Positions 4,696 to 54,643 of a stretch of DNA of 64,000 bases are shown one piece after another. A program made the translations under genes and the position numbers. The stretch lies in the sequence record ON529851.1; one strand, 5' to 3'. The notes under the pieces were generated by a model. It searched no databases. It saw only the letters and a list, made by a program, of their open reading frames with translations, and was not told the origin of the DNA. Position 1 is the stretch's first letter; the number at the start of each line of letters is the position of its first letter.

Positions 4696-4784
4696 TGGCG
4701 GATGGGGCAGGGATCGAACCCGCGTAACCCTCTCGGGTGTCGACCGCTTAGCAAGCGGCTGCCTTACCTCTCGGCCACCCATCC
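4696..4784 (-). tRNA. tRNA-Ser(GCT)
   Basis: Cloverleaf, loop TT-GCT-AA, long variable arm, G73-CCA. Confidence 0.93.
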
Positions 4785-4791
4785 GGGGTGA

Positions 4792-4876
4792 TGGCGGTGC
4801 GCCAGGGAATCGAACCCTCAACCTTGCGGTCGGCGACGGTTTTCAAGGCCGCTTGTCCCCATGGACGCTGCACACC
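4792..4876 (-). tRNA. tRNA-Ser(TGA)
   Basis: Loop CT-TGA-AA, long variable arm, G73-CCA; irregular D arm. Confidence 0.85.
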
Positions 4877-4881
4877 AAAGA

Positions 4882-4972
4882 TGGCGGACGGCACGCGATT
4901 CGAACGCGTGGGACCCAGGGGGTCCGCCTGCTTTCCAAGCAGGTGCCTTAAGCCGGGCTCAGCCAGCCGTCC
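4882..4972 (-). tRNA. tRNA-Ser(GGA)
   Basis: CCTGC-TTGGAAA-GCAGG, long variable arm, CCA. Confidence 0.93.
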
Positions 4973-4977
4973 GGTGT

Positions 4978-5195
4978 TGGTGGAGGCGAGGGGATTCGAA
5001 CCCCCGTAGACGCCGAACCCCCGCATTACCGAGGGCCGATCTCAGGTTTAGAACGCGTGTGCCGTCCTGACCATCTTCCGCAGGCCAGGAGGTCTATCGT
5101 AACGACCCCGTCGATCGGTTGCCTCTGCGTCCCGGATTTACCCGGACCGTTGTTCTGTTCCACGGTGCTCATGCCGAAACCCGAGCGACGCCCCC
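4978..5195 (-). ncRNA. Compact one-piece tmRNA-like RNA (218 nt)
   Basis: GGGGGCG/CGCCTCC-A-CCA acceptor with G3:U70, canonical T arm, no anticodon arm, tmRNA-like 5' end GGGGGCG..GGGTTTCGGC, internal GCA-started frame at 5122-5048. Confidence 0.62.
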
Positions 5196-5205
5196 GTGAA
5201 GGAAA

Positions 5206-5293
5206 TGGAGGATGGTGTGGGATTCGAACCCACGGAACCTTGCGGTCCTCCGGCTTTCGAAACCGGCGCGATCGGCCACTCCGCCAACCATCC
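5206..5293 (-). tRNA. tRNA-Ser(CGA)
   Basis: CCGGT-TTCGAAA-GCCGG, long variable arm, CCA. Confidence 0.92.
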
Positions 5294-5300
5294 AGAACAG

Positions 5301-5489
5301 TCAGGCCGAGGCCGGACTGTAGTTGTCGATGTCGTCGACCCGGATCGCCGTGCCCGCCGCAATCTGGCGGTCGGCGCTCAACAGGTCGGCGACCAGGTCG
5401 TCGGCCGAGACGGCGGTGCCGAGGGTGGCGAACTTCACGTTCACCAGGCGGCCGTCCGCAAACATCTCGTCGATCGCGGCGCGATCCAT
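5301..5489 (-). CDS. Hypothetical protein (62 aa) within the tRNA array
   Basis: ATG with SD AAAGGT; fills the gap between tRNAs. Confidence 0.7.
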   Translation of the reverse strand: MDRAAIDEMFADGRLVNVKFATLGTAVSADDLVADLLSADRQIAAGTAIRVDDIDNYSPASA

Positions 5490-5522
5490 GATAGACCTTT
5501 CTGCCGGACGCGCCGGCGGTGA

Positions 5523-5593
5523 TGGTGGAGACAGTGGGGCTCGAACCCACCAAGGCGTCCTTGCAAAGGATGCCTGCGCCCTGCGCTGTCCCC
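5523..5593 (-). tRNA. tRNA-Ala(TGC), minimal D loop
   Basis: GGGGACA/TGTCTCC with G3:U70, loop TT-TGC-AA. Confidence 0.85.
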
Positions 5594-5630
5594 GTAGGGG
5601 TTGATCGTCAGCCATGCTGACAACCATTGT

Positions 5631-5706
5631 TGGTCCTGGCACTCAGATTCGAACTGAGCCATCGTGCTCCACAAACACGCGCCTCCACCGCAGAGGCTTT
5701 ACCAGG
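5631..5706 (-). tRNA. tRNA-His(GTG)
   Basis: CGTGT-TTGTGGA-GCACG; A73 and no encoded G-1. Confidence 0.88.
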
Positions 5707-5708
5707 GT

Positions 5709-5796
5709 TGGTCGCGACGACAGGGATCGAACCTGCCCGGCCTCTCGGCCACTACCACCTCAAGGTAGCGCGTCTACCAGACTCCGCCACGTCGCG
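5709..5796 (-). tRNA. tRNA-Leu(GAG)
   Basis: CTACC-TTGAGGT-GGTAG, long variable arm. Confidence 0.92.
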
Positions 5797-5805
5797 ATCG
5801 AATGT

Positions 5806-5891
5806 TGGTGCCCGACCCCGGACTCGAACCGGGACGCCACGAGGGCCACGCCTTTTGAGGGCGCTGTGTCTACCGTTCCAGCCAGACGGGC
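5806..5891 (-). tRNA. tRNA-Leu(CAA)
   Basis: GCGCC-CTCAAAA-GGCGT, long variable arm. Confidence 0.92.
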
Positions 5892-5900
5892 AGTGAAAGA

Positions 5901-5987
5901 TGGTGCGGGTGAGAGGATTCGAACCTCCCCGGCACAAAGGCCACGAGTACCTGAGACTCGCGCGGCTACCAACTTCGCCACACCCGC
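5901..5987 (-). tRNA. tRNA-Leu(CAG)
   Basis: CGAGT-CTCAGGT-ACTCG, long variable arm. Confidence 0.92.
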
Positions 5988-5992
5988 ATTTT

Positions 5993-6074
5993 TGGAGAAC
6001 CCTGGTGGAGTCGAACCACTTGCGCCTGGATTAAAAGCCCAATCCCGGCCACCCGGATTTAACGCTCAAGGTCC
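5993..6074 (-). tRNA. tRNA-Lys(TTT), enlarged D region
   Basis: TTGGG-CTTTTAA-TCCAG; acceptor GGACCTT/AGGGTTC with wobble pairs. Confidence 0.72.
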
Positions 6075-6087
6075 CCTAAAATGATGT

Positions 6088-6178
6088 TGGTGAACGTGGT
6101 CGGACTCGCACCGACGATGAAGGTTGTAACCTAACGGGATTAAGAGCCCCGGCCTCTCGCTACTGAGGTGACACGTCC
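6088..6178 (-). tRNA. tRNA-Lys(CTT) with long variable arm
   Basis: CGGGG-CTCTTAA-TCCCG, 19-nt variable region, T loop TGCGAGT. Confidence 0.8.
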
Positions 6179-6216
6179 AAAACTGTTGTTCTTCTCCTGA
6201 AGACTTGATATGTGCA

Positions 6217-6287
6217 TGGAGCCGGCGGACGGTGTCGAACCGTCCCATGTCCACTACGAAAGGTCAGCCCTGCCACCAGGCGCCGGC
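6217..6287 (-). tRNA. tRNA-Thr(CGT)-like, degenerate
   Basis: GCCGGCG/CGCCGGC acceptor (Thr-type G1,C2,C3), good T arm, loop TT-CGT-AG with two stem mismatches. Confidence 0.55.
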
Positions 6288-6295
6288 GTTGTTGT

Positions 6296-6366
6296 TGGTG
6301 CCAAGGGAGGGAGTCAAACCCTCGCTGAACCCATACCAAGGGCTCGACCGATCACCCGGCCTTGGC
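6296..6366 (-). tRNA. tRNA-Thr(GGT)
   Basis: AGCCC-TTGGTAT-GGGTT; short D arm; CCA. Confidence 0.8.
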
Positions 6367-6374
6367 GTTGAAGA

Positions 6375-6449
6375 TGGTCGGAACACCGGGATTCGAACCT
6401 GGGACCCCTAGCTTCCCGAGCCAGTGCGCTACCGCTGCGCTACATTCCG
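6375..6449 (-). tRNA. tRNA-Pro(GGG)
   Basis: C1:G72, CTGGC-TCGGGAA-GCTAG. Confidence 0.92.
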
Positions 6450-6458
6450 ATTTGAAGA

Positions 6459-6535
6459 TGGTCGGCGAGGGAGGATTCGAACCTCCGATCCCTCCGACCC
6501 GAACGGAGTGACTTACCAGACTTGCCCACACGCCG
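6459..6535 (-). tRNA. tRNA-Pro(CGG)
   Basis: C1:G72, CTCCG-TTCGGGT-CGGAG. Confidence 0.93.
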
Positions 6536-6544
6536 ATGGAAACG

Positions 6545-6578
6545 AAAAAAGACCCCGGAGGCTATGCGCCTGGGGCCT
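6545..6578 (-). terminator. Intrinsic terminator (attenuator) about 10 nt upstream of the first tRNA of the array
   Basis: AGGCCCC-AGG/CCT-CC-GGGGTCT stem followed by TTTTTT. Confidence 0.75.
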
Positions 6579-6649
6579 GAAACAACTGCTGTTTTGGGAT
6601 TCAGCAGGTGATCGGCCCCTTAAGGGCGCCTCACCTGCGAGGACTGGAC

Positions 6650-6784
6650 TTAGGGCCAGCCTTCCAAGGAGACGCCACCGGTGGTGGGGGACTTCGGCGA
6701 CAGTTTCGTCGGCGCATGCGCGAGCGTCGACAGCGCCGTGGCGGCGGTCGAAAGATGGCTCAGCTTGTGCGACAAGGTAGTCAC
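6650..6784 (-). CDS. Candidate leader peptide MTTLSHKLSHLSTAATALSTLAHAPTKLSPKSPTTGGVSLEGWP (44 aa, GTG start)
   Basis: Codons 2-35 encode only T,L,S,H,K,A,P; lies between the promoter and the terminator of the tRNA array. Confidence 0.75.
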   Translation of the reverse strand: MTTLSHKLSHLSTAATALSTLAHAPTKLSPKSPTTGGVSLEGWP

Positions 6785-6836
6785 GATGAAGGTCCAGTCC
6801 GAAGAAGGAGCGCGAATGCGCTGTGATGAAGTCTGA

Positions 6837-6865
6837 TCTCTACAGGAAGCTTGAGCGTATGTCAA
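6837..6865 (-). promoter_or_regulatory. Promoter TTGACA-N17-TAGAGA of the main tRNA array
   Basis: Perfect -35 and 17-nt spacer. Confidence 0.7.
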
Positions 6866-6884
6866 GAACTTCAGCAGAAAAAGT

Positions 6885-6923
6885 TGGTAGAGGGGCTGAT
6901 CGCGCTTGTCGAGCGACCCTCTC
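6885..6923 (-). ncRNA. Candidate 39-nt CCA-ending minihelix RNA
   Basis: AGAGGG/CCCTCT-A-CCA hairpin starting at the predicted TSS of the 6931-6959 promoter, followed by a T run. Confidence 0.45.
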
Positions 6924-6930
6924 GAAACGC

Positions 6931-6959
6931 CTTGTGCCAGGATCGGCGGCGATCGTCAA
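6931..6959 (-). promoter_or_regulatory. Promoter TTGACG-N17-CACAAG
   Basis: Shares GCCGCCGATCCTGGCAC with the 8206-8234 promoter. Confidence 0.55.
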
Positions 6960-7062
6960 CAGGGAAAATGCACGCGCGCGGCCGAGGGGGAGCGGAAGAC
7001 CGCGCGCGTGCCCGGCAGACCGTCGGGGGACGGGGCCTGGGTCGTCGGGGGACGGGGAGGGG

Positions 7063-7299
7063 TCAGCCGGCGCGGCGCTTGAGCGTCTCGTGCAGCGGCG
7101 GATAGGGGACCGGGCCGTAGATCACCTCGACGAGGCGAGGGCGGCGGCCGGTGCGGATTTTGGAAGGCAGGGGCACGTTGCGGCGCCGCAGTTCGGCGGC
7201 GGCGGCGGCGCTCGCCAGGGAGCCTGACAGGTAGACGCCGATCAGTTCGGCGACCGTCAGGGTCATCATGCGCTGGGCGCGGGTGGTGTTGTGAGCCAC
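7063..7299 (-). CDS. Hypothetical protein (78 aa)
   Basis: GTG start with SD GGAGAG. Confidence 0.65.
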   Translation of the reverse strand: MAHNTTRAQRMMTLTVAELIGVYLSGSLASAAAAAELRRRNVPLPSKIRTGRRPRLVEVIYGPVPYPPLHETLKRRAG

Positions 7300-7397
7300 G
7301 AGGGTCTCTCCATCTGGATGTGATCCAGGCGGGAGACGCGGTTTCGCGCTGGGTGACCGGTGTGGTCCCCGTCCTGGAAATTACCAGATGCGAGAGT

Positions 7398-7589
7398 TTA
7401 GTCGGAGGGCTTGGCCCCGAAGACCGAGGCGATCGCCGTCAAAGCCTTCTTGACCCGGTTGGGCCGCTGGGTCAGCGCCGAGGCGCAGACCTTCTTGATT
7501 TCGTCGAGGGTGAGCGAGGCCGGGTCACGCAGGCCGCGCGCGGCGATCGAGCCGACGCTGGCGGAGGTGACTTCGGGGGTGATGCTCAT
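7398..7589 (-). CDS. Hypothetical protein (63 aa, MSITPEV...)
   Basis: ATG after GAGG, just downstream of tRNA-Asp. Confidence 0.65.
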   Translation of the reverse strand: MSITPEVTSASVGSIAARGLRDPASLTLDEIKKVCASALTQRPNRVKKALTAIASVFGAKPSD

Positions 7590-7600
7590 GGAAAAACCTC

Positions 7601-7675
7601 TGGCGAGTCCAAGGGGAGTTGAACCCCTCTCTCCACCGTGACAGGGTGGTGTCCTAACCGATAGACGATGGACCC
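7601..7675 (-). tRNA. tRNA-Asp(GTC)
   Basis: CCACC-CTGTCAC-GGTGG, G73-CCA. Confidence 0.94.
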
Positions 7676-7706
7676 GTATCAGAGGGTCGATCCGCAGGAA
7701 GATGCT

Positions 7707-7784
7707 TGGAAGGGCGCCGGAGACTCGAACTCCGCTCACTTGGTTGAAAGCCAAGTATCCTGCAAACCGCTAGACGAGCGCCCC
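7707..7784 (-). tRNA. tRNA-Glu(TTC)
   Basis: CTTGG-CTTTCAA-CCAAG, CCA. Confidence 0.9.
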
Positions 7785-7818
7785 ATAAAGCACAGGGCGT
7801 CGAACACGAGAGCCGCGA

Positions 7819-7884
7819 TTAGGCGGCGGTCGTATCTCGGCCCTGGAAGGCCTCTCGTTCGTAGCTGGTCAGACGGTAGATCAT
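7819..7884 (-). CDS. Candidate leader peptide MIYRLTSYEREAFQGRDTTAA (21 aa)
   Basis: ATG at the predicted TSS of the 7891-7919 promoter, directly ahead of the Glu/Asp tRNAs. Confidence 0.5.
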   Translation of the reverse strand: MIYRLTSYEREAFQGRDTTAA

Positions 7885-7890
7885 TTGGTG

Positions 7891-7919
7891 CTTGTAACAG
7901 AACTGTCGGTGGGTGTCAA
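7891..7919 (-). promoter_or_regulatory. Promoter TTGACA-N17-TACAAG
   Basis: Perfect -35 and 17-nt spacer; leaderless. Confidence 0.68.
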
Positions 7920-8095
7920 GAAGGACGGCGAAACTTTTTGGCCTTTCGGGCGGGTCGATCCTCATCGACTTCAGGCTCGGCCGCGTCCCTGCCCATCCAC
8001 AGGGCCGCGAGAAACGCGGGCGGACCCATCAGGGCTTCCAAGCGCTTCAAGGCCCGGTCGTTGGCCGCCAGGAAGGCGTCGCCGTATTCAAGCAT
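7916..8095 (-). CDS. Hypothetical protein (59 aa, MLEYGDAF...)
   Basis: SD GAGG upstream of the ATG. Confidence 0.6.
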   Translation of the reverse strand: MLEYGDAFLAANDRALKRLEALMGPPAFLAALWMGRDAAEPEVDEDRPARKAKKFRRPS

Positions 8096-8156
8096 GGAAC
8101 CTCGGAGGATACAGGGGCAGGCTTCAATGGACGGCGTTTGACCGCGCCCATCTCGG

Positions 8157-8198
8157 TGGTAGCAGCACACCAGCCCTGCTCGGCTGGCCCCGCCCCTC
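8157..8198 (-). ncRNA. Second candidate CCA-ending minihelix RNA (42 nt)
   Basis: Starts at the predicted TSS of the 8206-8234 promoter; GCCAGCC/GGCTGGT hairpin; ends CT-A-CCA. Confidence 0.35.
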
Positions 8199-8205
8199 GT
8201 TCCGG

Positions 8206-8234
8206 CGTGTGCCAGGATCGGCGGCAAAGGTCAA
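8206..8234 (-). promoter_or_regulatory. Promoter TTGACC-N17-CACACG
   Basis: 17-nt identity with the 6931-6959 promoter. Confidence 0.5.
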
Positions 8235-8431
8235 GGGTAAAATCGACGGGTGACCGCTACCGGCCTCGCCTGCTGGCCCGTCCCAGCGCCTGACCTTCTC
8301 GACGCGACGCCCTTGTGGGCGTTATGGCCTTCCCGTCCGAAGACAGACGCCGCGAAGGGTCAGCGGGACCGCATGATCGTCAGCCGCACGGCCAGCGCAG
8401 CGAGAGGTTCAGAGGCCTGTCCCGGAAAGAG

Positions 8432-8506
8432 TGGAGCGACTGGTCGGAATCGAACCGACGTCCCCAGGTTGGAAGCCTGGTGCTAAGGCCCCTCAGCTAC
8501 AGTCGC
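8432..8506 (-). tRNA. tRNA-Gly(TCC)
   Basis: CCAGG-CTTCCAA-CCTGG, U73-CCA. Confidence 0.92.
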
Positions 8507-8520
8507 AGTATAAAACAAGG

Positions 8521-8596
8521 TGGAGCGACTCTCGGGACTCGAACCCGACCCTGCGCGTTGGCAACGCGTTGTACCCACCCATAATACGTGAGTCGC
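8521..8596 (-). tRNA. tRNA-Gly(GCC)
   Basis: Loop TT-GCC-AA, U73-CCA. Confidence 0.88.
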
Positions 8597-8608
8597 ATGG
8601 TTAATAAA

Positions 8609-8690
8609 TGGCACGGGTGGAGGGATTCGAACCCCCGACATATGCTGGTTTTGGAGACCAGTGCCTTGAGCCAGACTTGGCGACACCCGT
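8609..8690 (-). tRNA. tRNA-Trp(CCA)
   Basis: CTGGT-CTCCAAA-ACCAG, G73-CCA. Confidence 0.9.
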
Positions 8691-22702: not shown

Positions 22703-24745
22703 TTAATTCGTGAAGGAGAGCGCGGGGATCGCCTGGCCCTGGACCAGCTTGAACCGCACGAGGATGAGATTGTCGGTCGCGTTCGTGGACGACTGCGTGC
22801 CGAAGGTGATGGTGAAGACGCCCGAGGCGCCCGTCATGACGGAGCCGGAGGCGCACCCAGCCAGGGGATCGCCGGTTTCGCCGGGAACGCCGGCGCCGTC
22901 GTAGGGCTTGAAGCCGTCCCACCAGCCGCCCGGCGCGTTGGGCTGCTGATCCGAGACGCCCGGCAGTTTGATCCAGCAACCGGCGTAGGCGCCGCTGACG
23001 TTGATCTTGAAGGCCGAACGGGCCGCGCGGCGGAAGGCGAAGGTGGCGTATTGCGCGCCGTCGCGGCCGACCGACAGGTCCGGTCCGACGGGCAGGTGGC
23101 CTTGAGCGTAGTTCGTGCGGTTGTGCGCCAGCACGCCGGCGACGACCGCCGCCTCGTGCGCGGGCAGGGCCGTCGAGGCGTCCCAGGAGCCGTGAGGAGC
23201 GGCAGGCGTGTCGCCGGCGGCCGTGGACACCCGAACCGCGTTGAGGCCGTTGGGCAGCGCCCCCAGGCCCGTCACGGGCACGTTCATTTCGTCGAGGCGC
23301 GCGCCGGCCGAGCCGCGCTTGATCAGGATGGTCGGTCCGCCCAGATCGACCGTGGTCGCGCCGTTGACGTTGCGGGCCACGCCGCTGATCTTGCCGGACA
23401 GATGGCCCGAGCCATCGACCGTGATGGTCTGCGGGGTCACGGCCTGGGCCGTCAGGGTGTTGCGCGGCAGCGGCGCGTCGATCCCGGTCGCGGGGACGTA
23501 GCTGTAGGTCTTGGTCGCGATCACCGGGCCGGTGAACTGGATCGGGTCGCCGCCGCCGTAGTAGGTCTCGCCCGCCAGATTGGCGATCGACATGGAGACC
23601 GTGAGGGCGGCGCCGTCGCCGTAGTGGGGGACGCCCGAGGAATAGACCAGGGTTCCGGCCGACGCCTGCGTCACAGCGCCCGCGCTGATGGTCGGGCTGG
23701 CGGTCAGATCGTCACGCATGAAGGTGACGATGTTCGTGGGGCCGGCTTCGGTGTGGTCGATCTGCGCCGCGTTCAGACCCTGCGGCACAGGGACGCCCGT
23801 CAGGCGCACGTCGAACGACTTCCAGAAGCCCGGCGTCTCTACCGGGAAATCCTTCTGATCAGAGATCGTCAGACCGCCGTAGGTGCCGTTGTCCGACACG
23901 CCGTCAAGCAGGCGCGAGGCGACCAGGGCGCCGTTCAGGTAGACTTCGAGTTGGCCGACATCGCCCGGACCGACATCGTTCAGGGCCGTCGTCTGGACGG
24001 CGGCGGCGGTGATGCGCGTGACCGCCGTGCCCGGCGTCAGGGTGGCGGTGGTGTTGTTGGTGTAGCCTTGGACCAGGCGCGCCTGGGTCCCCGCCGTGTT
24101 CGAAACAGCGATGGCCCCGTTCGGGAACATCGGCGGCTGCGACGGGATCAGCTTGCCCAGGACTTCGTTGAGGCGGTCGACGGCCTCGGAGACCGGGGTT
24201 TCGTTGACCAGGGGCACGGCGCCCGGCGTCCAGGAGCCGTCGCCGAACTCGACGATGTCGCCCAGGACGACATGGAAACCGTCCAGGTTGTCGATCTTGT
24301 CGGCGGCGTCTTGCAGGCGGACGTTGACCTTGGAGATCGCCGTAGCGACGTCGGTGGTTTCGTCCAGATCGACGGCGCCGCTTCCCCACAGGCCTTCGCC
24401 GGTGTCGGGATCGACGCGATCGCCCAGCGGGATGTTGGTCCCGATGGGGGAGAAGTTCGCAAGGGCCAGGTTCAGGCGCTGGAGCGCCTCGGCCAGGTTG
24501 TCGGTCGGCTCCAGCACCACCAGGCCGCCGGTCCAGTCGGTGCGGTCGCCCAGGTAGATTTGATCCGCGTCGCGCGCCTCGGCGACGACGACGCTGACCG
24601 AACCGTCAGCCCCATACTCGCCCGCGAACAGAAGGCCGCAGGTGTAACCCTCGTCTTCCGGCGGGGTCTTGGCGAAGAGGGGGAACGCCCGGTGGGTCTC
24701 GACGTCGACTGCGACATCGCCCGTGACGTCGACGAGCAGAGCCAT
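22703..24745 (-). CDS. Virion structural protein (680 aa, MALLVDV...)
   Basis: ATG just after the stop of 24747-25118; paralog of 20519-22690. Confidence 0.82.
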   Translation of the reverse strand: MALLVDVTGDVAVDVETHRAFPLFAKTPPEDEGYTCGLLFAGEYGADGSVSVVVAEARDADQIYLGDRTDWTGGLVVLEPTDNLAEALQRLNLALANFSPIGTNIPLGDRVDPDTGEGLWGSGAVDLDETTDVATAISKVNVRLQDAADKIDNLDGFHVVLGDIVEFGDGSWTPGAVPLVNETPVSEAVDRLNEVLGKLIPSQPPMFPNGAIAVSNTAGTQARLVQGYTNNTTATLTPGTAVTRITAAAVQTTALNDVGPGDVGQLEVYLNGALVASRLLDGVSDNGTYGGLTISDQKDFPVETPGFWKSFDVRLTGVPVPQGLNAAQIDHTEAGPTNIVTFMRDDLTASPTISAGAVTQASAGTLVYSSGVPHYGDGAALTVSMSIANLAGETYYGGGDPIQFTGPVIATKTYSYVPATGIDAPLPRNTLTAQAVTPQTITVDGSGHLSGKISGVARNVNGATTVDLGGPTILIKRGSAGARLDEMNVPVTGLGALPNGLNAVRVSTAAGDTPAAPHGSWDASTALPAHEAAVVAGVLAHNRTNYAQGHLPVGPDLSVGRDGAQYATFAFRRAARSAFKINVSGAYAGCWIKLPGVSDQQPNAPGGWWDGFKPYDGAGVPGETGDPLAGCASGSVMTGASGVFTITFGTQSSTNATDNLILVRFKLVQGQAIPALSFTN

Positions 24746-24746
24746 A

Positions 24747-25118
24747 TTAGCGGAGACGGACCTGGATGTGGTCCTGCGGGATGATGATCCCTTGACCGGA
24801 TTCGGTGGCCCGCGAGGTGCGCAGGCGGCCGTAGAGAACCATGTCCCCTTCGGCGTCGAAGATGGCGAAGTAGTTGACCTGGACCCAGTCGTTGATCGCC
24901 GGGCCGAAGGCCAGCGGGCCAACCGTAGTCAGGTTGGTGATGCCGGCGGCGACGGTCTTGGCGAGCGTGATCGGCTGGCGGGCGTAACCGAGGTCCGCCG
25001 CCGGTTCGACGATCAGCGTGCCGTCAGGCTCGGGTGCGGACGCGAGCAGGCCCAGGGTGAGATCATCACCCCAGGCCGCGATGATCGCGTCGTGAGTCTT
25101 ATACGACAGGTTGGGCAC
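24747..25118 (-). CDS. Phage structural protein (123 aa)
   Basis: GYARQPIT...FG.A...W..V.YFAIFDA.G pattern. Confidence 0.78.
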   Translation of the reverse strand: MPNLSYKTHDAIIAAWGDDLTLGLLASAPEPDGTLIVEPAADLGYARQPITLAKTVAAGITNLTTVGPLAFGPAINDWVQVNYFAIFDAEGDMVLYGRLRTSRATESGQGIIIPQDHIQVRLR

Positions 25119-25129
25119 GGTGGAGGGCC

Positions 25130-25678
25130 TTACTTGGCCTTGCGACCGCGACGGGGGGTCTTGGTGACGGTGGTCGTGTCGGCGGCGTCTTCGACAGCCG
25201 GGACGTCGATGGCGTCTTCATCGTCCAGGTCGGAGGCGTCTTCCGCCGGGGCGGCGGAGAAGTCCTTGACGGCGGGCTCCGGCAGATGCGCGGCGGCGGC
25301 GGCCGCTGCGGCGGCCTTGGCCTGCATCTCAGCCTGGGCGACCAGCGCGGCTTGAGCGGCGGCGGCTTCCAGGGCTTGCTGCTGGGCGATCGCGGCGGCC
25401 ATGGCGGCTTGCTGCTGTTGCAGGGCCTGGGCGGCCTGGGACGCGGCCGGCGACTGACCGTTCTCGTCCTTGCCCGTGGCGCGGTCGAGCACGCGCTGCG
25501 AGGGCGCGGGGCCTTCCGGCGGGGTCACGGTGGCGAAGGGGGCGTAGGCGGCGGGGTTCGCCGGCACGAAGCGCGACCAGGTGTAGCCGGCGCCGACGAC
25601 GAGGTCACGCGCGTTGGGGCGGGTGTGCTTCTCGGGGTTGCCGTTGGGGTCGTAGATGATGACGGTGTTGTCGGCCAT
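25130..25678 (-). CDS. Hypothetical protein (182 aa, MADNTVII...), Ala/Gln-rich
   Basis: Low-complexity coiled region, KTPRRGRKAK tail. Confidence 0.75.
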   Translation of the reverse strand: MADNTVIIYDPNGNPEKHTRPNARDLVVGAGYTWSRFVPANPAAYAPFATVTPPEGPAPSQRVLDRATGKDENGQSPAASQAAQALQQQQAAMAAAIAQQQALEAAAAQAALVAQAEMQAKAAAAAAAAAHLPEPAVKDFSAAPAEDASDLDDEDAIDVPAVEDAADTTTVTKTPRRGRKAK

Positions 25679-25891
25679 GTGCGGCGTAAATCCTGCGTAT
25701 CGGGTAGATGCGAAAAAGGGCGCAGTCGAGCCGCGCGAGACTAGGCTTTCTGGCATGAATCCTGCTCAAAGTCAAGATTTCCAGCACTGAGCGCCAGGAA
25801 TCACGGCAATGAGAGTCCCCTTCGTCGCGACGCCGTCTCAATCCACATATCCACAACAGCGACGCTTCTGTGGATAAGTCAGGATTCCTGA

Positions 25892-25920
25892 TTGACGGCT
25901 CAGGGCGACCCCGCTAAATC
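25892..25920 (+). promoter_or_regulatory. Caulobacter housekeeping-sigma promoter TTGACG...GCTAAATC
   Basis: Matches the TTGACG / GCTANAWC consensus, antisense to flanking genes. Confidence 0.75.
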
Positions 25921-25925
25921 CCTAA

Positions 25926-26438
25926 TCGTCGCTTCGGAAACGGAGCGGCCGGCAACCGGGCCTCGGCCCGACTAGCCGGGCTCTGAAGGGTATGCAGTCC
26001 TGGACTGATCCTGACAGAGTTGAGGCCGGACGCCGGGGTGACCCGGTCCATCCGCCGAGACATGGTATCTCAAGGCTGCCGCAGCCCAAGAGACCGATCC
26101 TCGGGCCGCCAAAGGTCGTAAGACTGATGGTCAGGCGCATCAGCCGGTCGGCGCAGCGATGTGACGATGGGTCCTAAGGCGCCACGGACTTCGCACCCTC
26201 GGGTGCGGGAGCCAAGGCGTAGAGATGCAGTTCAGGGCCTTCGGGCTGTGGTTCTGTAGGTCAAGTCCAGCCACGGCGACGTGGTCGGCCCGCTGACCCC
26301 ACCTTCTTCGGGGAAACCTGATGCCCTGGTGGACTCTCCTGCCCCTCGCTGTAATGGCGCAGGACGGGCGCGACGTCGAACCAGAACCAGATTGTCGGGA
26401 AGGCCCGCCTCGTATCTTCGGATGCAGGCGGGCCTTTT
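25926..26438 (+). ncRNA. Large structured noncoding RNA candidate (~510 nt)
   Basis: Bounded by a promoter and a terminator; several GNRA/UUCG-capped hairpins; long-range pairing; no credible ORF. Confidence 0.68.
26400..26438 (+). terminator. Intrinsic terminator, possibly bidirectional
   Basis: AAGGCCCGCCT...AGGCGGGCCTT stem followed by TTTT. Confidence 0.8.
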
Positions 26439-26443
26439 GCGTT

Positions 26444-26875
26444 TCAGCCCTCAGGCGCCGCTGCGATCACCAGGGTGTAGGGGTACTGGACGGTGGTCAC
26501 CCCGATCTGCACGCCCACCATGACAGTGATGGCGGTCTCGGCGAGTTCGACCATAAACCCCGTCCCCACAATATAGGCGAAGCCTTCCTCATCCACGATG
26601 ACGCGGCCGTCCTCGGTGAGGAACTTGAAGCGTCCGCCGGCGTCGTCGACCAGGCTATAGTTGGCCCAGGGTTGATCCACCTTGACCATGGCGACGCCGT
26701 GCGCGGCGGACGTCTTGTCGACCAGGGGATGCAGGGGGTGAATCTCGTAACCAGTGATGGACGGCGCGAGGCCGAAGCCAACACTCGCGCCGCGCACGTT
26801 CCGCAGGCTCTGCGGGGTCGTGGCGTGGTGATGACGCGCGAGCGCCTGGAGGTCGATTTGGTAGGTGTGGGCCAC
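26444..26875 (-). CDS. Hypothetical head-module protein (143 aa)
   Basis: GTG start with SD AGGA; downstream of the capsid genes. Confidence 0.7.
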   Translation of the reverse strand: MAHTYQIDLQALARHHHATTPQSLRNVRGASVGFGLAPSITGYEIHPLHPLVDKTSAAHGVAMVKVDQPWANYSLVDDAGGRFKFLTEDGRVIVDEEGFAYIVGTGFMVELAETAITVMVGVQIGVTTVQYPYTLVIAAAPEG

Positions 26876-27033
26876 GGAATGTCCTGAGAGAATCTCGAAA
26901 GGGGTGATCGGCCGCTACCCGATCCGACGCCGTTCGACCCTATGTCCTGGCCGGCGTCCGCGCTGCGCGGTCCCACAGGCCTGGCGACCTGACTCATATT
27001 TACCCAGCGCAGGGTGTAGATGCGCTGCAAAAG

Positions 27034-27062
27034 AAAAGGGCCGCCCCTTGCGGAGCGGCCCT
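27034..27062 (-). terminator. Terminator after the capsid genes
   Basis: AGGGCCGC/GCGGCCCT stem with a T run on the minus strand. Confidence 0.75.
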
Positions 27063-27089
27063 AGTCTTTACCCGAAGGCGAAGGCCGAC

Positions 27090-27515
27090 TTAGGCCTTCG
27101 AGTTCGGTCCGGCGAACGCGTAGTACGAAACCGTACCGCTCGCTTCGACTTCCGCGTAAACGCGGATGCCAGCGGCGTCGGCGTCAGCCGCAGCCAGGGT
27201 GGCGGGGTCGAACTTCAGCACGAAGGTCTTGCCGGCGACGGCAGTGACCGTGCCACCGGGGGCGTCGACCGGGTTGGCGCCAGCGGCGTCAACGGTCTGG
27301 ACCTTGATGGTGGCGTCCGTGGCCGCGTCGACGACGATGACGACGTCGAACGGCGTTTGGCCGTACAGGTTCTTCAGGTCGCCGCGACCAGCGGTCAGGC
27401 GGTGAAGGTCGACCACGAGGCCGCCGGCGGCCGAGGCCGTGACAGCGGTGGCGCGATCATCGATCGAACGGAGCGCCAGAAGGGCGTCATAACCGTGCTT
27501 GATCTTGGAGTTCAT
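27090..27515 (-). CDS. Minor capsid/decoration protein
   Basis: Directly downstream of MCP; beta-rich 141 aa; position typical of phiCbK-like minor capsid genes. Confidence 0.72.
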   Translation of the reverse strand: MNSKIKHGYDALLALRSIDDRATAVTASAAGGLVVDLHRLTAGRGDLKNLYGQTPFDVVIVVDAATDATIKVQTVDAAGANPVDAPGGTVTAVAGKTFVLKFDPATLAAADADAAGIRVYAEVEASGTVSYYAFAGPNSKA

Positions 27516-27593
27516 CTTGAAATGTCCGTTTCGAAGAAGGTTTGTAGAGAGAAAGCCGGGGTGGCCGAAGCCACCCCTTAGCCATCATCGCCC

Positions 27594-28529
27594 TTAGGCG
27601 ACGACGGCAGCCTTCTTGATGCCCCAGACGCGAGCGGCGGCGCGGCCCGACAGCACCGCGAGGCTGATCAGCCACTCGATGCGGGTACGGTAGACGGGCT
27701 TGTCGTTGACTTGGCCGAGGTCGTCGACTTCCATCACGCCGTTTTGCAGGCCCATGACGCCCGAGTCGCCGATGTTCACGACGTAGATCGAGGTGCCGAC
27801 AGCGGCGCCGCCACCGGGGTTCGCTTCATTGAAGTCGATGACCTGGGTGTTGGTGTCGTCGTAGTCGGTGGTCAGGATGGGCAGGTCGTTGTAGAACGCG
27901 ATGCGCTCGCCGAACTCGTTCTTGTCCCAGGTGATGAAGCCGGCAACCGACGTCTGACGCGAAGCGGCCGACAGCAGGTTACGCATGCGCTTCGACATGA
28001 TCAGGTGCGTGGCACCGTCAACGGCGTCGATGGCTTCGTCCAGGACTTGCAGCGACAGAGCGTCGCCGCCCGACGAGGCGCCGGCCGGGATCAGTTGGTC
28101 GCCGACGATGCGCTTGCGCAGGCCGTCGAATTCACGCGGATCGGCTTCCGAGTCGCCGGTGATGATCTTGCCAGCCAGGAAGAGCGAGAGGGCCTTGACC
28201 TTCATCTTCTCCTGCATGGTGCGGATGTTCGCGCCATGGGTCTTGATCAGGGCCTTGTCGACGTCCAGGTCGCCGCCAACAATCTTCAGGACTTCGACCT
28301 GCGAGTTGATGACGCCGACGCCGTTGCCGTAAGCTTCGTTGAAGCCACGGAACGCAACGCCCGGCAGTTGGCCTTCTTGGGTGTAGGTGTACGAGCCACC
28401 CGGAACATCCATGAACGGCAGGACCTTCAGGAGGTCCGGATAGGCGAAGAGTTCGATGATCGCCGAACGCTTGACCTCGTCGTTGCCCATCGCCAGATCG
28501 GCGGCTTCGAGCAGAGTGAGAGCAGCCAT
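27594..28529 (-). CDS. Major capsid protein (HK97-like)
   Basis: LTLLEAA...IIELF...GVAFRGFNEAY...GGDLDVDKAL...FDGL pattern. Confidence 0.92.
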   Translation of the reverse strand: MAALTLLEAADLAMGNDEVKRSAIIELFAYPDLLKVLPFMDVPGGSYTYTQEGQLPGVAFRGFNEAYGNGVGVINSQVEVLKIVGGDLDVDKALIKTHGANIRTMQEKMKVKALSLFLAGKIITGDSEADPREFDGLRKRIVGDQLIPAGASSGGDALSLQVLDEAIDAVDGATHLIMSKRMRNLLSAASRQTSVAGFITWDKNEFGERIAFYNDLPILTTDYDDTNTQVIDFNEANPGGGAAVGTSIYVVNIGDSGVMGLQNGVMEVDDLGQVNDKPVYRTRIEWLISLAVLSGRAAARVWGIKKAAVVA

Positions 28530-28850
28530 GCTACTGTATCCTCAGAGTTTTTAATGGTGGTCGCAATTGAGGAGGCGGCCCCCGCCTCGGGCTCCCCCTC
28601 GGACCGACCACCGGCACCCGAGGGAATGAGTGAGGAGTCATGTTTCCCAGGGAAACGTGACTCCGTTCTTGTTTCGCGGATCGCCATGCGGGCGCTCGAC
28701 GCGGAAAGTAGGTTGCCCATTCGGGCGAAATCTGTGCCGGCAGTTAACGAGGGCCGGCGGCTCGGCGGGCTGATTAAGGAGAGCCCGCAGTCTCCGATCG
28801 ACGGTGCCGCCGATCACCTCTTGGCGGAGAGGAAGCCGTGGGAGGCGTCT

Positions 28851-29642
28851 TTACAGACGCGCACCCTTGTCGCCGTTCGCCAGGGCCAGCTTGTCGTTGG
28901 CCGACATGCCGCGCATCTCAGCGGTCGTCTTGCCGAGCGGACCGCGTTGGTCGCTTGCGCCACCACCGCCGGCGCCGCCGCCGTGCGTACCCTTGAACAT
29001 GTGCGGGGCTTCGTCCTTCAGCTTCATGATCCACTCCTTGGGCGTCAGCGGCGAGCCGCCGTCAGCACCGTACAGTTGCAGATCGCCTTGGAACGCCAGC
29101 ACACGGCCGTCGTCTTGGGCGCGCCACACATCGGCTGCGCGGGACAGGATGTCGCGAACCGCCGAGGGCTGGACACCGAGTTCCGGGTCGATGATGGCGT
29201 CCTTGATCGCAGTCGACACCAGCGTGCGCTTGTGCGTGCTCTCAATCTCGCCGGCCTTGGTCTTCCAGAGCGCGCCTTCCTTCTGGGCGGCGCGAATCTG
29301 GTCCTCCAGGACCTTCTTCATGTCTTCAGTACGACGGATCACTTCTTCTTCGATCCGGCGACTGTCGGTCAGTTGACCGTCTTTGACTCGCTGCGAGGTC
29401 GCCCGCAGTTCGGTCAGTTCGTTGGTGAAGGCGGTGGGGTCGTCGCCGACGATCGGCGCCAGGACCTCAACGGCCTTCTTGAGTTCGTCGCGCTCCTTGA
29501 CGAGCGAGATGTTCGTTTCGCGGAACTCGTCCATCTTGTCCTGGGGGACCAGATTGATTTGAACCTTGTCGCCTTCAGCCTTGGCGTAGGTGCGCAGGGC
29601 GTCCGGAATTTGATCGAGCGAGTCGAACGTGAAAATGGGCAT
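28851..29642 (-). CDS. Capsid scaffolding protein
   Basis: Coiled coil upstream of MCP; LKDEAPHMFK..GGGAGG tail. Confidence 0.8.
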   Translation of the reverse strand: MPIFTFDSLDQIPDALRTYAKAEGDKVQINLVPQDKMDEFRETNISLVKERDELKKAVEVLAPIVGDDPTAFTNELTELRATSQRVKDGQLTDSRRIEEEVIRRTEDMKKVLEDQIRAAQKEGALWKTKAGEIESTHKRTLVSTAIKDAIIDPELGVQPSAVRDILSRAADVWRAQDDGRVLAFQGDLQLYGADGGSPLTPKEWIMKLKDEAPHMFKGTHGGGAGGGGASDQRGPLGKTTAEMRGMSANDKLALANGDKGARL

Positions 29643-54171: not shown

Positions 54172-54443
54172 CGGGCGTCTCCGTGAGGGCCAATCCCTCT
54201 TGACCTGACCAATATGGGGGCAAGAAGTTAACAAGAGGTTAACACCAGAAAAAAGTTTGGTGAAAACGACTCGCAAGTTTTCGGCCCTCGACGCCGGGCG
54301 CGGAGGGGTGCGGGCGGGCCGGGGCGGCGGGCCTCGACCGGGCGGGGCGGTCCAGCCCGCCGAGGGGCGCGGCGCGAGCCGGGGGTCAGGATCGACCGGG
54401 CGGCCAGCCCTGCCGGGCGCGGGCCGCGCGGGCGGCAGGGTCT

Positions 54444-54559
54444 CCCGTGGGCGGAAACGGCCCGACGTCAAGTTCGCCCGTGTAGGCGGAAACGGCCCGA
54501 CGTCAAGTTCGCCCGTGTAGGCGGAAACGGCCCGACGTCAAGGTCGCCCGTGGGCGGAA
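54444..54559. repeat. 35-bp tandem repeat, about 3.3 copies
   Basis: Unit GCGGAAACGGCCCGACGTCAAGTTCGCCCGTGTAG. Confidence 0.9.
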
Positions 54560-54643
54560 GTGAAGCCGCGTCAAGTCAAATCCGCGAGCGAAAGCGAAGC
54601 GGCGTCAGGTCAAGCCCGAAGGCGAAAGCGACGCCGCGTCAGG

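Follow-up and report, generated by a model that had tools for sequence, protein, structure and literature searches.

Brevundimonas phage vB_BpoS-Marchewka (ON529851.1) – a 348 kb, phiCbK-like member of the Dolichocephalovirinae – very probably carries, among its head genes, a real and transcribed gene for a structured non-coding RNA of a new family. We analyzed the first 64,000 nucleotides of this genome (the window, in which position numbers are those of the record). The RNA is encoded on the plus strand at 25925–26438 and is ~510–515 nt long, with a predicted 5′ end at ~25926–25929 and a 3′ end within the U-run at 26435–26438. It is a new class of the GOLLD and ROOL kind and a member of neither. 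An earlier, sequence-only reading had proposed a large structured phage RNA at this site, and our analysis supports that proposal in that the RNA is structured, transcribed, and distinct from GOLLD and ROOL. The complete statement – that this is a stand-alone gene for a ~510 nt RNA of a new family, expressed by host RNA polymerase under the influence of DnaA and acting in trans as a compact particle – is in our judgment an even call.

The RNA gene lies within a 687-bp gap between two minus-strand coding sequences (25130–25756 and 26444–26875). Genes around the gap are on the minus strand throughout, and the RNA unit, counted from promoter to terminator (25892–26438), is on the plus strand. The capsid side of the gap holds a 143-amino-acid ORFan (26444–26875), convergent with the RNA gene and adjoining its 3′ end with a stop codon at 26444, as well as a phrog_427 protein (annotated as a minor capsid protein in the phiCbK record), the major capsid protein (27594–28529), and the scaffolding protein (28851–29642). 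On the other side is a phrog_10854 protein (MARCHEWKA_00440; 25130–25756) and, beyond it, the head protein phrog_240. With these neighbors, the head operon setting recognized from the sequence was correct. The annotated start of MARCHEWKA_00440 (25679–25756) is probably too far upstream, since alignments to homologues and to the PHROG profile begin only at about residue 22–30 and an in-frame ATG is present at 25678; a minus-strand terminator-like hairpin (25736–25720) falls inside the annotated N-terminus. Elsewhere in the window, at least ten tRNA genes are clustered at 4699–8690 on the minus strand, 17 kb from the RNA gene. The phage has been reported to encode 24 tRNAs (PMC10070969).

The unit opens with an RpoD-type (sigma-70 family) promoter at 25892–25920, composed of a −35 element TTGACGG (25892–25898), a 14-nt spacer, and a −10 element GCTAAATC (25913–25920). 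This promoter matches the Caulobacter RpoD consensus TTGaCgS / GCtANAWC at 15 of 15 positions (PMC8144410), and the near-perfect Caulobacter promoter noticed earlier is therefore present. Its pattern is rare in the 64-kb window (three matches versus 0.10 expected), and a scan for E. coli-type promoters did not see it, as expected for a promoter of the host's type. TTGAC and CTA.A are invariant across the seven phages that carry the RNA, and the spacer between them varies in sequence at constant length.

At the other end, a strong intrinsic terminator had been claimed and is likewise present at 26399–26438, where a 17-bp hairpin with a UUCG loop (26399–26437) is followed by UUUU in a U-run ending at 26438. 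The hairpin was found by folding and is helix 27 of the consensus fold described below, 98% paired and with one compensatory change among the seven sequences. A simple terminator scan missed it because its stem has a bulge. The terminator abuts the stop codon (26444) of the convergent gene and, when read on the minus strand, its hairpin has no U-tail.

Homologues of the RNA occur at the syntenic site in six other B. pondensis phages, within a gap that holds no minus-strand gene. The seven phages form three clades: Marchewka and Bambus (99% identity); Kabachok, Domovoi, and Papperlapapp (~82% identity to the Marchewka clade); and Gurke and Kikimora (53–58% identity to the other clades). The place of the RNA between head genes is the same in all three clades, though the neighboring genes differ. 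At its 3′ side, Marchewka and Bambus have the 143-amino-acid ORFan, and Kabachok, Papperlapapp, Gurke, and Kikimora have a 311-amino-acid protein that is weakly related over 145 amino acids. Domovoi has no gene there; ~350 bp of non-coding DNA contains a duplicated ~35-bp segment, CATATTTACCCAGCGCGGGGCGTAAACGCGCTGC. On the 5′ side, the Kabachok clade (L002:2680–2850 in our Kabachok locus, and also Domovoi and Papperlapapp) has an additional plus-strand ORF of 56 amino acids just upstream of the DnaA-box-like sites discussed below. This ORF comes with a similar promoter of its own and a ribosome-binding site, and ends in a stop codon that overlaps the first of these sites; it has no match in Pfam or PHROG and is absent from Marchewka, Bambus, Gurke, and Kikimora.

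Comparison of the clades bears on whether the RNA gene might instead be a protein-coding gene that has decayed or been mis-annotated. In the Kabachok clade, one frame runs open along the full length of the RNA, and two records annotate it: KABACHOK_04620 (L002:2822–3460) and DOMOVOI_05190 (L005:1822–2466) are plus-strand ‘hypothetical protein’ coding sequences of 639–645 nt that lie over the RNA gene. Long spurious ORFs are, however, expected at 65% G+C. This frame is broken in Marchewka and Bambus by three 1-nt indels and by stops, and differs again in Gurke. The clades have no ORF over the RNA in common, the three indels that separate Marchewka from Kabachok within it are each of 1 nt, and substitutions fall at the three codon positions in the proportion 29/33/31 and thus have no codon periodicity. 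The two annotated coding sequences are almost certainly spurious, because of the missing shared ORF, the 1-nt indels, and the lack of codon periodicity. Together with the strong covariation of the structure, these observations make a coding origin scarcely credible, and they bear out the original assessment that the RNA holds no credible ORF.

We derived a consensus fold from the seven phage sequences with RNAalifold. It comprises 165 base pairs in 27 helices, with compensatory double changes in 40 pairs. In the alignment, 91.8% of consensus pair cells are paired, versus 33–46% when the 3′ partners are slid by one to three columns, and the 40 pairs with double changes compare with 3–12 in the slid controls. 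None of 500 shuffles reached the observed covariation score – a statistic limited by a sample of three effective lineages from one host species and one sewage source, and by an uncertain alignment in the central part of Gurke and Kikimora. G–U cells outnumber A–C cells by 134 to 33, which points to the plus strand as the folded one. Minimum free energy z-scores across the three clades range from −3.9 to −5.4 on the plus strand and from −1.0 to −2.2 on the minus strand; for Marchewka itself they are −3.6 to −4.5, and for its relatives −3.9 to −5.4. The homolog search and covariation check proposed at the outset thus yielded a conserved fold that passed its controls, and covariation above controls, combined with the discrete transcript described below, is what would generally be looked for in a structured non-coding RNA.

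From 5′ to 3′, the fold consists of a 5′ hairpin, a closing helix, a central domain, three further arms, an invariant junction CCAGAACCAGAU, and the terminator. The 5′ terminal hairpin (helix 1; 25928–25949) begins within ~3 nt of the predicted 5′ end. It has 9 bp and a GAAA loop, replaced by GUAA in Gurke and Kikimora, and pairing across the seven sequences is 100%, with one compensatory change from G–C to A–U. The closing helix (helix 2) pairs 25950–25957 with 26390–26397 and encloses the multi-domain core. Its seven pairs are 100% paired, with A–U to G–C covariation. A second long-range helix (helix 4; 25975–25980, GCCGGG, with 26271–26277) closes the central domain and its five hairpin arms; it is 95% paired, and its support is moderate, as its changes are one-sided only. 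Among the conserved loops of the RNA are five GNRA tetraloops, which point to probable tertiary contacts, and a GUAAN pentaloop.

The most strongly conserved part of the RNA is near its 3′ end. Segment GAACCAGAACCAGAUUGUCG (26378–26397) contains the junction, which is single-stranded, and the 3′ side of the closing helix. Within it the stretch 26381–26392, which runs from the second C of GAACC to the end of AGAU, does not differ among the seven phages, so that CCAGAACCAGAT is invariant across clades that are otherwise 53–58% identical. We found no conserved pseudoknot and no conserved pairing partner for this invariant segment within the RNA, candidates being about as numerous as expected by chance. 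Sites complementary to it were not enriched in the window, and none was convincing. We also observed no palindromic kissing-loop signature of homo-oligomers in the RNA, taking palindromic covarying loops as a proxy.

The hairpins and long-range pairings first picked out in the Marchewka sequence were conserved to differing degrees. All five tetraloop hairpins named there exist in Marchewka, and four of the five are kept across clades, several with compensatory changes, but GCC-UUCG-GGC is specific to Marchewka and Bambus. The proposed long-range complementarity is real in these two phages, but it is not conserved in the other clades and does not belong to the consensus fold. TGGTTCTG, which had been placed at about 26228, is in fact at 26249–26256, with its partner CAGAACCA at 26382–26389. 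The second suggested pairing, CGACGT with ACGTCG, is likewise not conserved beyond Marchewka and Bambus and falls outside the consensus fold.

No known family accounts for the RNA. A search of the window with Rfam 15 at gathering scores returned no family at the RNA locus, and relaxing the threshold to E≤10 at the locus and E≤5 for Kabachok and Gurke returned chance rows only. The cmscan comparison that had been suggested as a check therefore favors a new class over membership of GOLLD or ROOL. ARAGORN found no gene and no tmRNA at the locus; the paper that describes the isolation of these phages also found no tmRNA (PMC10070969). Our literature search found no description of the RNA.

We considered and rejected several specific assignments. 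Membership of GOLLD or ROOL is contradicted by the absence of an Rfam model match, the distance of 17 kb to the tRNAs, and the head-gene neighborhood. RNase P RNA has no Rfam model match here, and the invariant 3′ segment has no conserved partner. A tmRNA, in one or two pieces, is found neither by ARAGORN nor by Rfam. Group I and group II introns have no Rfam match, and the unit sits between genes with its own promoter and terminator and gives contigs without joints. A phi29-type packaging RNA (pRNA) has no family-model match; the single row named ‘pRNA’, RF01518, is the mammalian NoRC RNA, lies on the minus strand at E=1.1, and is a chance match. As for a cis-regulatory leader or riboswitch, no plus-strand gene lies downstream, and the terminator abuts the convergent stop codon.

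A catalytic RNA outside these families – for example, a divergent RNase P-like enzyme for the phage's 24 or more tRNAs – has a slight chance of being correct. Large bacterial RNAs that are rich in GNRA loops and multi-helix junctions are often catalytic (PMC5737381), the phage has many tRNAs (PMC10070969), and an invariant single-stranded segment sits beside the closing helix. Against these points, the models for RNase P, group I and group II introns, and small ribozymes were unmatched at E≤10 in three divergent homologues, the invariant segment has no P4-type pairing, and the RNA contigs have neither joints nor internal ends.

Orientation raises another alternative, in which the unit is an antisense or transcription-interference element that separates upstream from downstream head-gene expression and the fold is incidental. 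The initial description of the RNA as antisense-oriented holds for its orientation only, in that the opposite strand of the RNA carries no gene in Marchewka. The RNA is convergent to the minus-strand gene at 26444–26875, and the lack of a minus-strand U-tail at the terminator hairpin would allow read-through from that gene across the RNA gene in Marchewka. The minus-strand terminator-like site at 25736–25720 could likewise fit such an element. In the Kabachok clade, however, the convergent gene has a separate terminator of its own that would block read-through, so that the overlap is not conserved. No CDS or annotated minus-strand gene overlaps the RNA, and its fold is kept by compensatory substitutions, which pure antisense action does not require. 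We give this alternative a very slight chance.

Public sequencing data indicate that the RNA exists as a transcript. We searched an index of public runs by 31-mers and placed Logan contigs from four libraries, representing four studies, on positions 23500–29000. Runs with words of the RNA are mainly RNA libraries (ten, from seven studies, with many from wastewater). In RNA libraries, the fraction of query words present is no higher than 0.18 when a 1.4-kb stretch is the query and reaches 0.60 when the query is the RNA by itself, so that every indexed 31-mer they contain comes from within the RNA. In DNA libraries the fraction does not exceed 0.06.

In a rhizosphere metatranscriptome (X2), the RNA is represented by a single 460-nt contig that covers exactly 25941–26400 at a depth of 94.5 and has the Bambus alleles. 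Capsid gene depth in this library is 0, and its flanks contain no phage sequence, only one unrelated 33-nt partial match near 24941–24973. A viral-particle RNA library (X1) covers the RNA at a depth of 37–48 (48 for 25935–26284), versus 0.3–3 for scattered phage contigs. In both X1 and X2, flank depth is 0–3 over 2.4 kb on each side, capsid gene included. Two further libraries (X4 and X8) hold pieces of the RNA at low depth, and the flanks in X8 are matched only by short parts of unrelated contigs. Contigs of the RNA stop within the 5′ hairpin loop and at the base of the terminator hairpin, because palindromes break k-mer assemblies, and they contain no joints, indels, or internal ends. As Logan contigs carry neither strand nor true ends, the strand and the 5′ and 3′ ends of the RNA are those predicted above. 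The runs were picked for holding the RNA, and carry-over between sequencing projects is possible for any single run. The RNA is a discrete, abundant, and long-lived species that is present far above the neighboring capsid mRNAs.

The nature of these libraries leads to the possibility that the RNA is associated with virions – packaged in, or taking part in the assembly of, the very long prolate head, loosely in the manner of the phi29 packaging RNA. Such a role would explain both why the gene sits in the head module and why the RNA turns up in libraries made from particle-derived RNA, and the gene stays between head genes in three clades despite differing neighbors. In two ‘viral metagenome’ RNA libraries, X1 and X3, depth over the RNA is ~15–25 times that over the phage flanks, and many of the other runs are wastewater RNA libraries. 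If X1 and X3 came from the phage-isolation study – a link that is a guess – the particles had been treated with Salt Active Nuclease before extraction (PMC10070969). Host rRNA also survived this treatment, however, and survival is thus no proof of encapsidation (PMC10070969). In addition, phiCbK, CcrColossus, CcrPW, and Bajun build similar heads without the RNA, the promoter is of a host housekeeping type and not obviously late, and no Rfam model, phi29 pRNA included, matches. We consider a virion role unlikely.

The region upstream of the promoter suggests a different connection to the host. Three DnaA-box-like sites lie at 25839–25877, with the RNA promoter on one side and the divergent region upstream of the phrog_10854 gene on the other: CAATCCACA at 25839–47 (plus strand), ATATCCACA at 25847–55 (plus strand), and a perfect TTATCCACA at 25869–77 (minus strand). 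For comparison, the published consensus sequences are TTATCCACA for the DnaA box of E. coli and TGATCCACA for the G-box of Caulobacter (PMC4285127). Of the five ATCCACA heptamers in the 64-kb window, three fall within this cluster, as does the window's only TTATCCACA (0.07 expected), and the sites are conserved in all seven phages and all clades. The ATATCCACA and TTATCCACA sites form a 17-nt imperfect palindrome centered on 25862. Measured from the predicted RNA start, the site centers lie ~55, ~75, and ~85 bp upstream, a placement that appears to resemble the position of an activator; it is equally possible that the palindrome is the operator of a phage regulator. The cluster could therefore serve DnaA control, a phage regulator, or a replication origin of which it is part. 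The RNA site has no AT-rich unwinding element and no change in GC skew.

A second region with similar sequences is found on the minus strand at 54229–54560. At least three tandem ~35-bp repeats there each contain TTGAC-N16-19-CTAMA, like the RNA promoter, and are followed by GTTAACCTCTTGTTAAC, which has the TTAA-N7-TTAA CtrA-box consensus, and then by an ORF. This region may have a regulatory role or act as an origin, with a link to the host cell cycle.

The DnaA-box-like cluster brings in the further possibility that the RNA belongs to an episomal pseudolysogen, as a DnaA-controlled persistence RNA made by host RNA polymerase from an otherwise silent episome or as part of a host-recognized origin. 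The idea has two forms: the RNA could maintain the carrier state, or its transcription could activate a nearby DnaA-dependent origin. Members of the Dolichocephalovirinae persist as episomes in soil and rhizosphere bacteria, and a host-recognized origin has been proposed for them (PMC12195562). The cluster adjoins a perfect host promoter, and in the rhizosphere metatranscriptome X2 the RNA has a depth of 94.5 against 0 for the capsid gene. Missing capsid mRNA is nevertheless weak evidence, as any stable non-coding RNA would give the same pattern; stable non-coding RNAs normally exceed mRNAs by orders of magnitude. The origin form also meets the lack of an unwinding element and of a GC-skew change at the site, and a better origin-like region is available at ~54.2–54.6 kb, with its tandem repeats and CtrA box. 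Neither a primer nor an activating transcript needs to be a terminated RNA of conserved structure. Finally, although the carrier state is known for the subfamily, pseudolysogeny in these Brevundimonas phages is only presumed. An episomal role strikes us as improbable on this balance. The catalytic, antisense, and coding alternatives discussed above are less likely than either the virion or the episomal one.

The distribution of the RNA is narrow. BLAST searches of phage records with Marchewka and Gurke as queries returned only the same seven phages, with one copy each, and a search of plasmids returned no match to the RNA. We also scanned for motifs, screening the resulting loci by alignment, BLAST, and profile HMM. 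Four patterns in IMG/VR gave 2, 0, 0, and 6 loci, JGI metagenomes gave 76, and GTDB genomes gave 65; all were chance matches to the motif alone. No RNA homologue accompanies the IMG/VR relatives of the capsid protein, of which the two closest contigs end before the slot, and the downstream neighbor of the RNA has no IMG/VR relatives. The syntenic slot is ~190 bp in phiCbK and is filled by unrelated genes in CcrColossus, CcrPW, and Bajun; CcrColossus gp083, which has the same slot and orientation, encodes an ordinary, unrelated protein. Because the slot lacks the RNA or holds other genes in relatives, it is a variable cargo site, and the RNA is a cargo of 312–357 kb B. pondensis phages at that site. 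In one surface metatranscriptome (X4), we observed a 154-nt contig corresponding to ~26025–26086 that represents a diverged variant of the RNA (~90% identity over 62 nt) and has flanks unlike those of any of the seven phages. This variant hints at further lineages that are so far seen only in RNA data.

Our preferred reading, a trans-acting RNA particle, would operate as follows. The sequence itself indicates that the plus strand is transcribed from the RpoD-type promoter, by what would be host RNA polymerase, and that the RNA ends at the intrinsic terminator. The 5′ hairpin, the closing helix that joins both ends, and the terminator hairpin seal the molecule, and the sealed, GNRA-rich, multi-domain fold would – judging from its architecture and by analogy – form a compact, nuclease-resistant particle. 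We infer from the same analogy that its three-dimensional shape is what lets this particle act in trans, be it as a scaffold, a sponge, or an RNA-protein or RNA-only assembly like those of GOLLD and ROOL, and that neither antisense pairing nor cis regulation would be its mode of action. Host DnaA may tune expression through the upstream box cluster, which would uncouple the RNA from late head-gene expression. A more specific version makes the RNA a new kind of functional particle, either packaged with or needed for building the very long prolate capsids, or else the signature transcript, switched by DnaA, of the episomal carrier state; we offer it tentatively, as more doubtful than probable.

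ROOL (~581 nt) and GOLLD (>800 nt) are large ornate RNAs of phages and prophages that provide the closest comparison. Like them, the Marchewka RNA is phage-encoded, forms its own transcription unit, exceeds 500 nt, has many helices and junctions, has no known protein partner, and is abundant during phage activity. GOLLD and ROOL are thought to act as folded particles, with 8-mer and 14-mer nanocages seen by cryo-EM; the Marchewka RNA is known from sequence and contigs. It differs from them in having no sequence or structural homology (their Rfam models are silent at E≤10), in lying 17 kb from the nearest tRNA, where GOLLD and ROOL are often beside tRNA islands, in its alphaproteobacterial host and its restriction to seven phages, and in the absence of a palindromic kissing-loop signature. 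With phi29 pRNA it shares being a structured, phage-encoded RNA found in particle-derived preparations and linked, by position only, to head morphogenesis. Unlike pRNA, it is about three times longer, has no model match, and is expressed from a host-type promoter inside the head module.

Other comparisons extend to the host. Bacterial RNase P RNA and tmRNA (the latter also in its two-piece alphaproteobacterial form) resemble the Marchewka RNA in size class, in having ends joined by a terminal helix, in GNRA loops and stability, and in the tRNA-rich phage context, but the RNA matches neither in Rfam and has no ARAGORN match. The placement of DnaA-box-like sites directly upstream of a housekeeping promoter resembles units timed by DnaA and CtrA in Caulobacter, such as the promoters in and around the chromosomal origin, and suggests that expression of the RNA may be coupled to the host replication cycle. 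In contrast to those units, the product here is a 510-nt structured phage RNA.

Very few non-coding RNAs of bacteria and phages are longer than ~400 nt and have complex conserved folds – the rRNAs, RNase P RNA, tmRNA, self-splicing introns, OLE, GOLLD, ROOL, and a handful more – and work on each of them has brought unusual biochemistry or architecture to light. The Marchewka RNA adds one to this small set. It is also tractable, as the phages and their host are cultured, the promoter and terminator are defined, the RNA is abundant in the environment, and the DnaA boxes offer a possible regulatory handle; it is thus open to genetics, pull-downs, and cryo-EM. More broadly, RNA libraries made for the study of RNA viruses hold unrecognized stable RNAs of DNA phages, and two public phage records annotate the RNA gene as a protein. 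If either the capsid-particle or the episomal-carrier reading is true, the role would be new among those described for phage non-coding RNAs of similar length.
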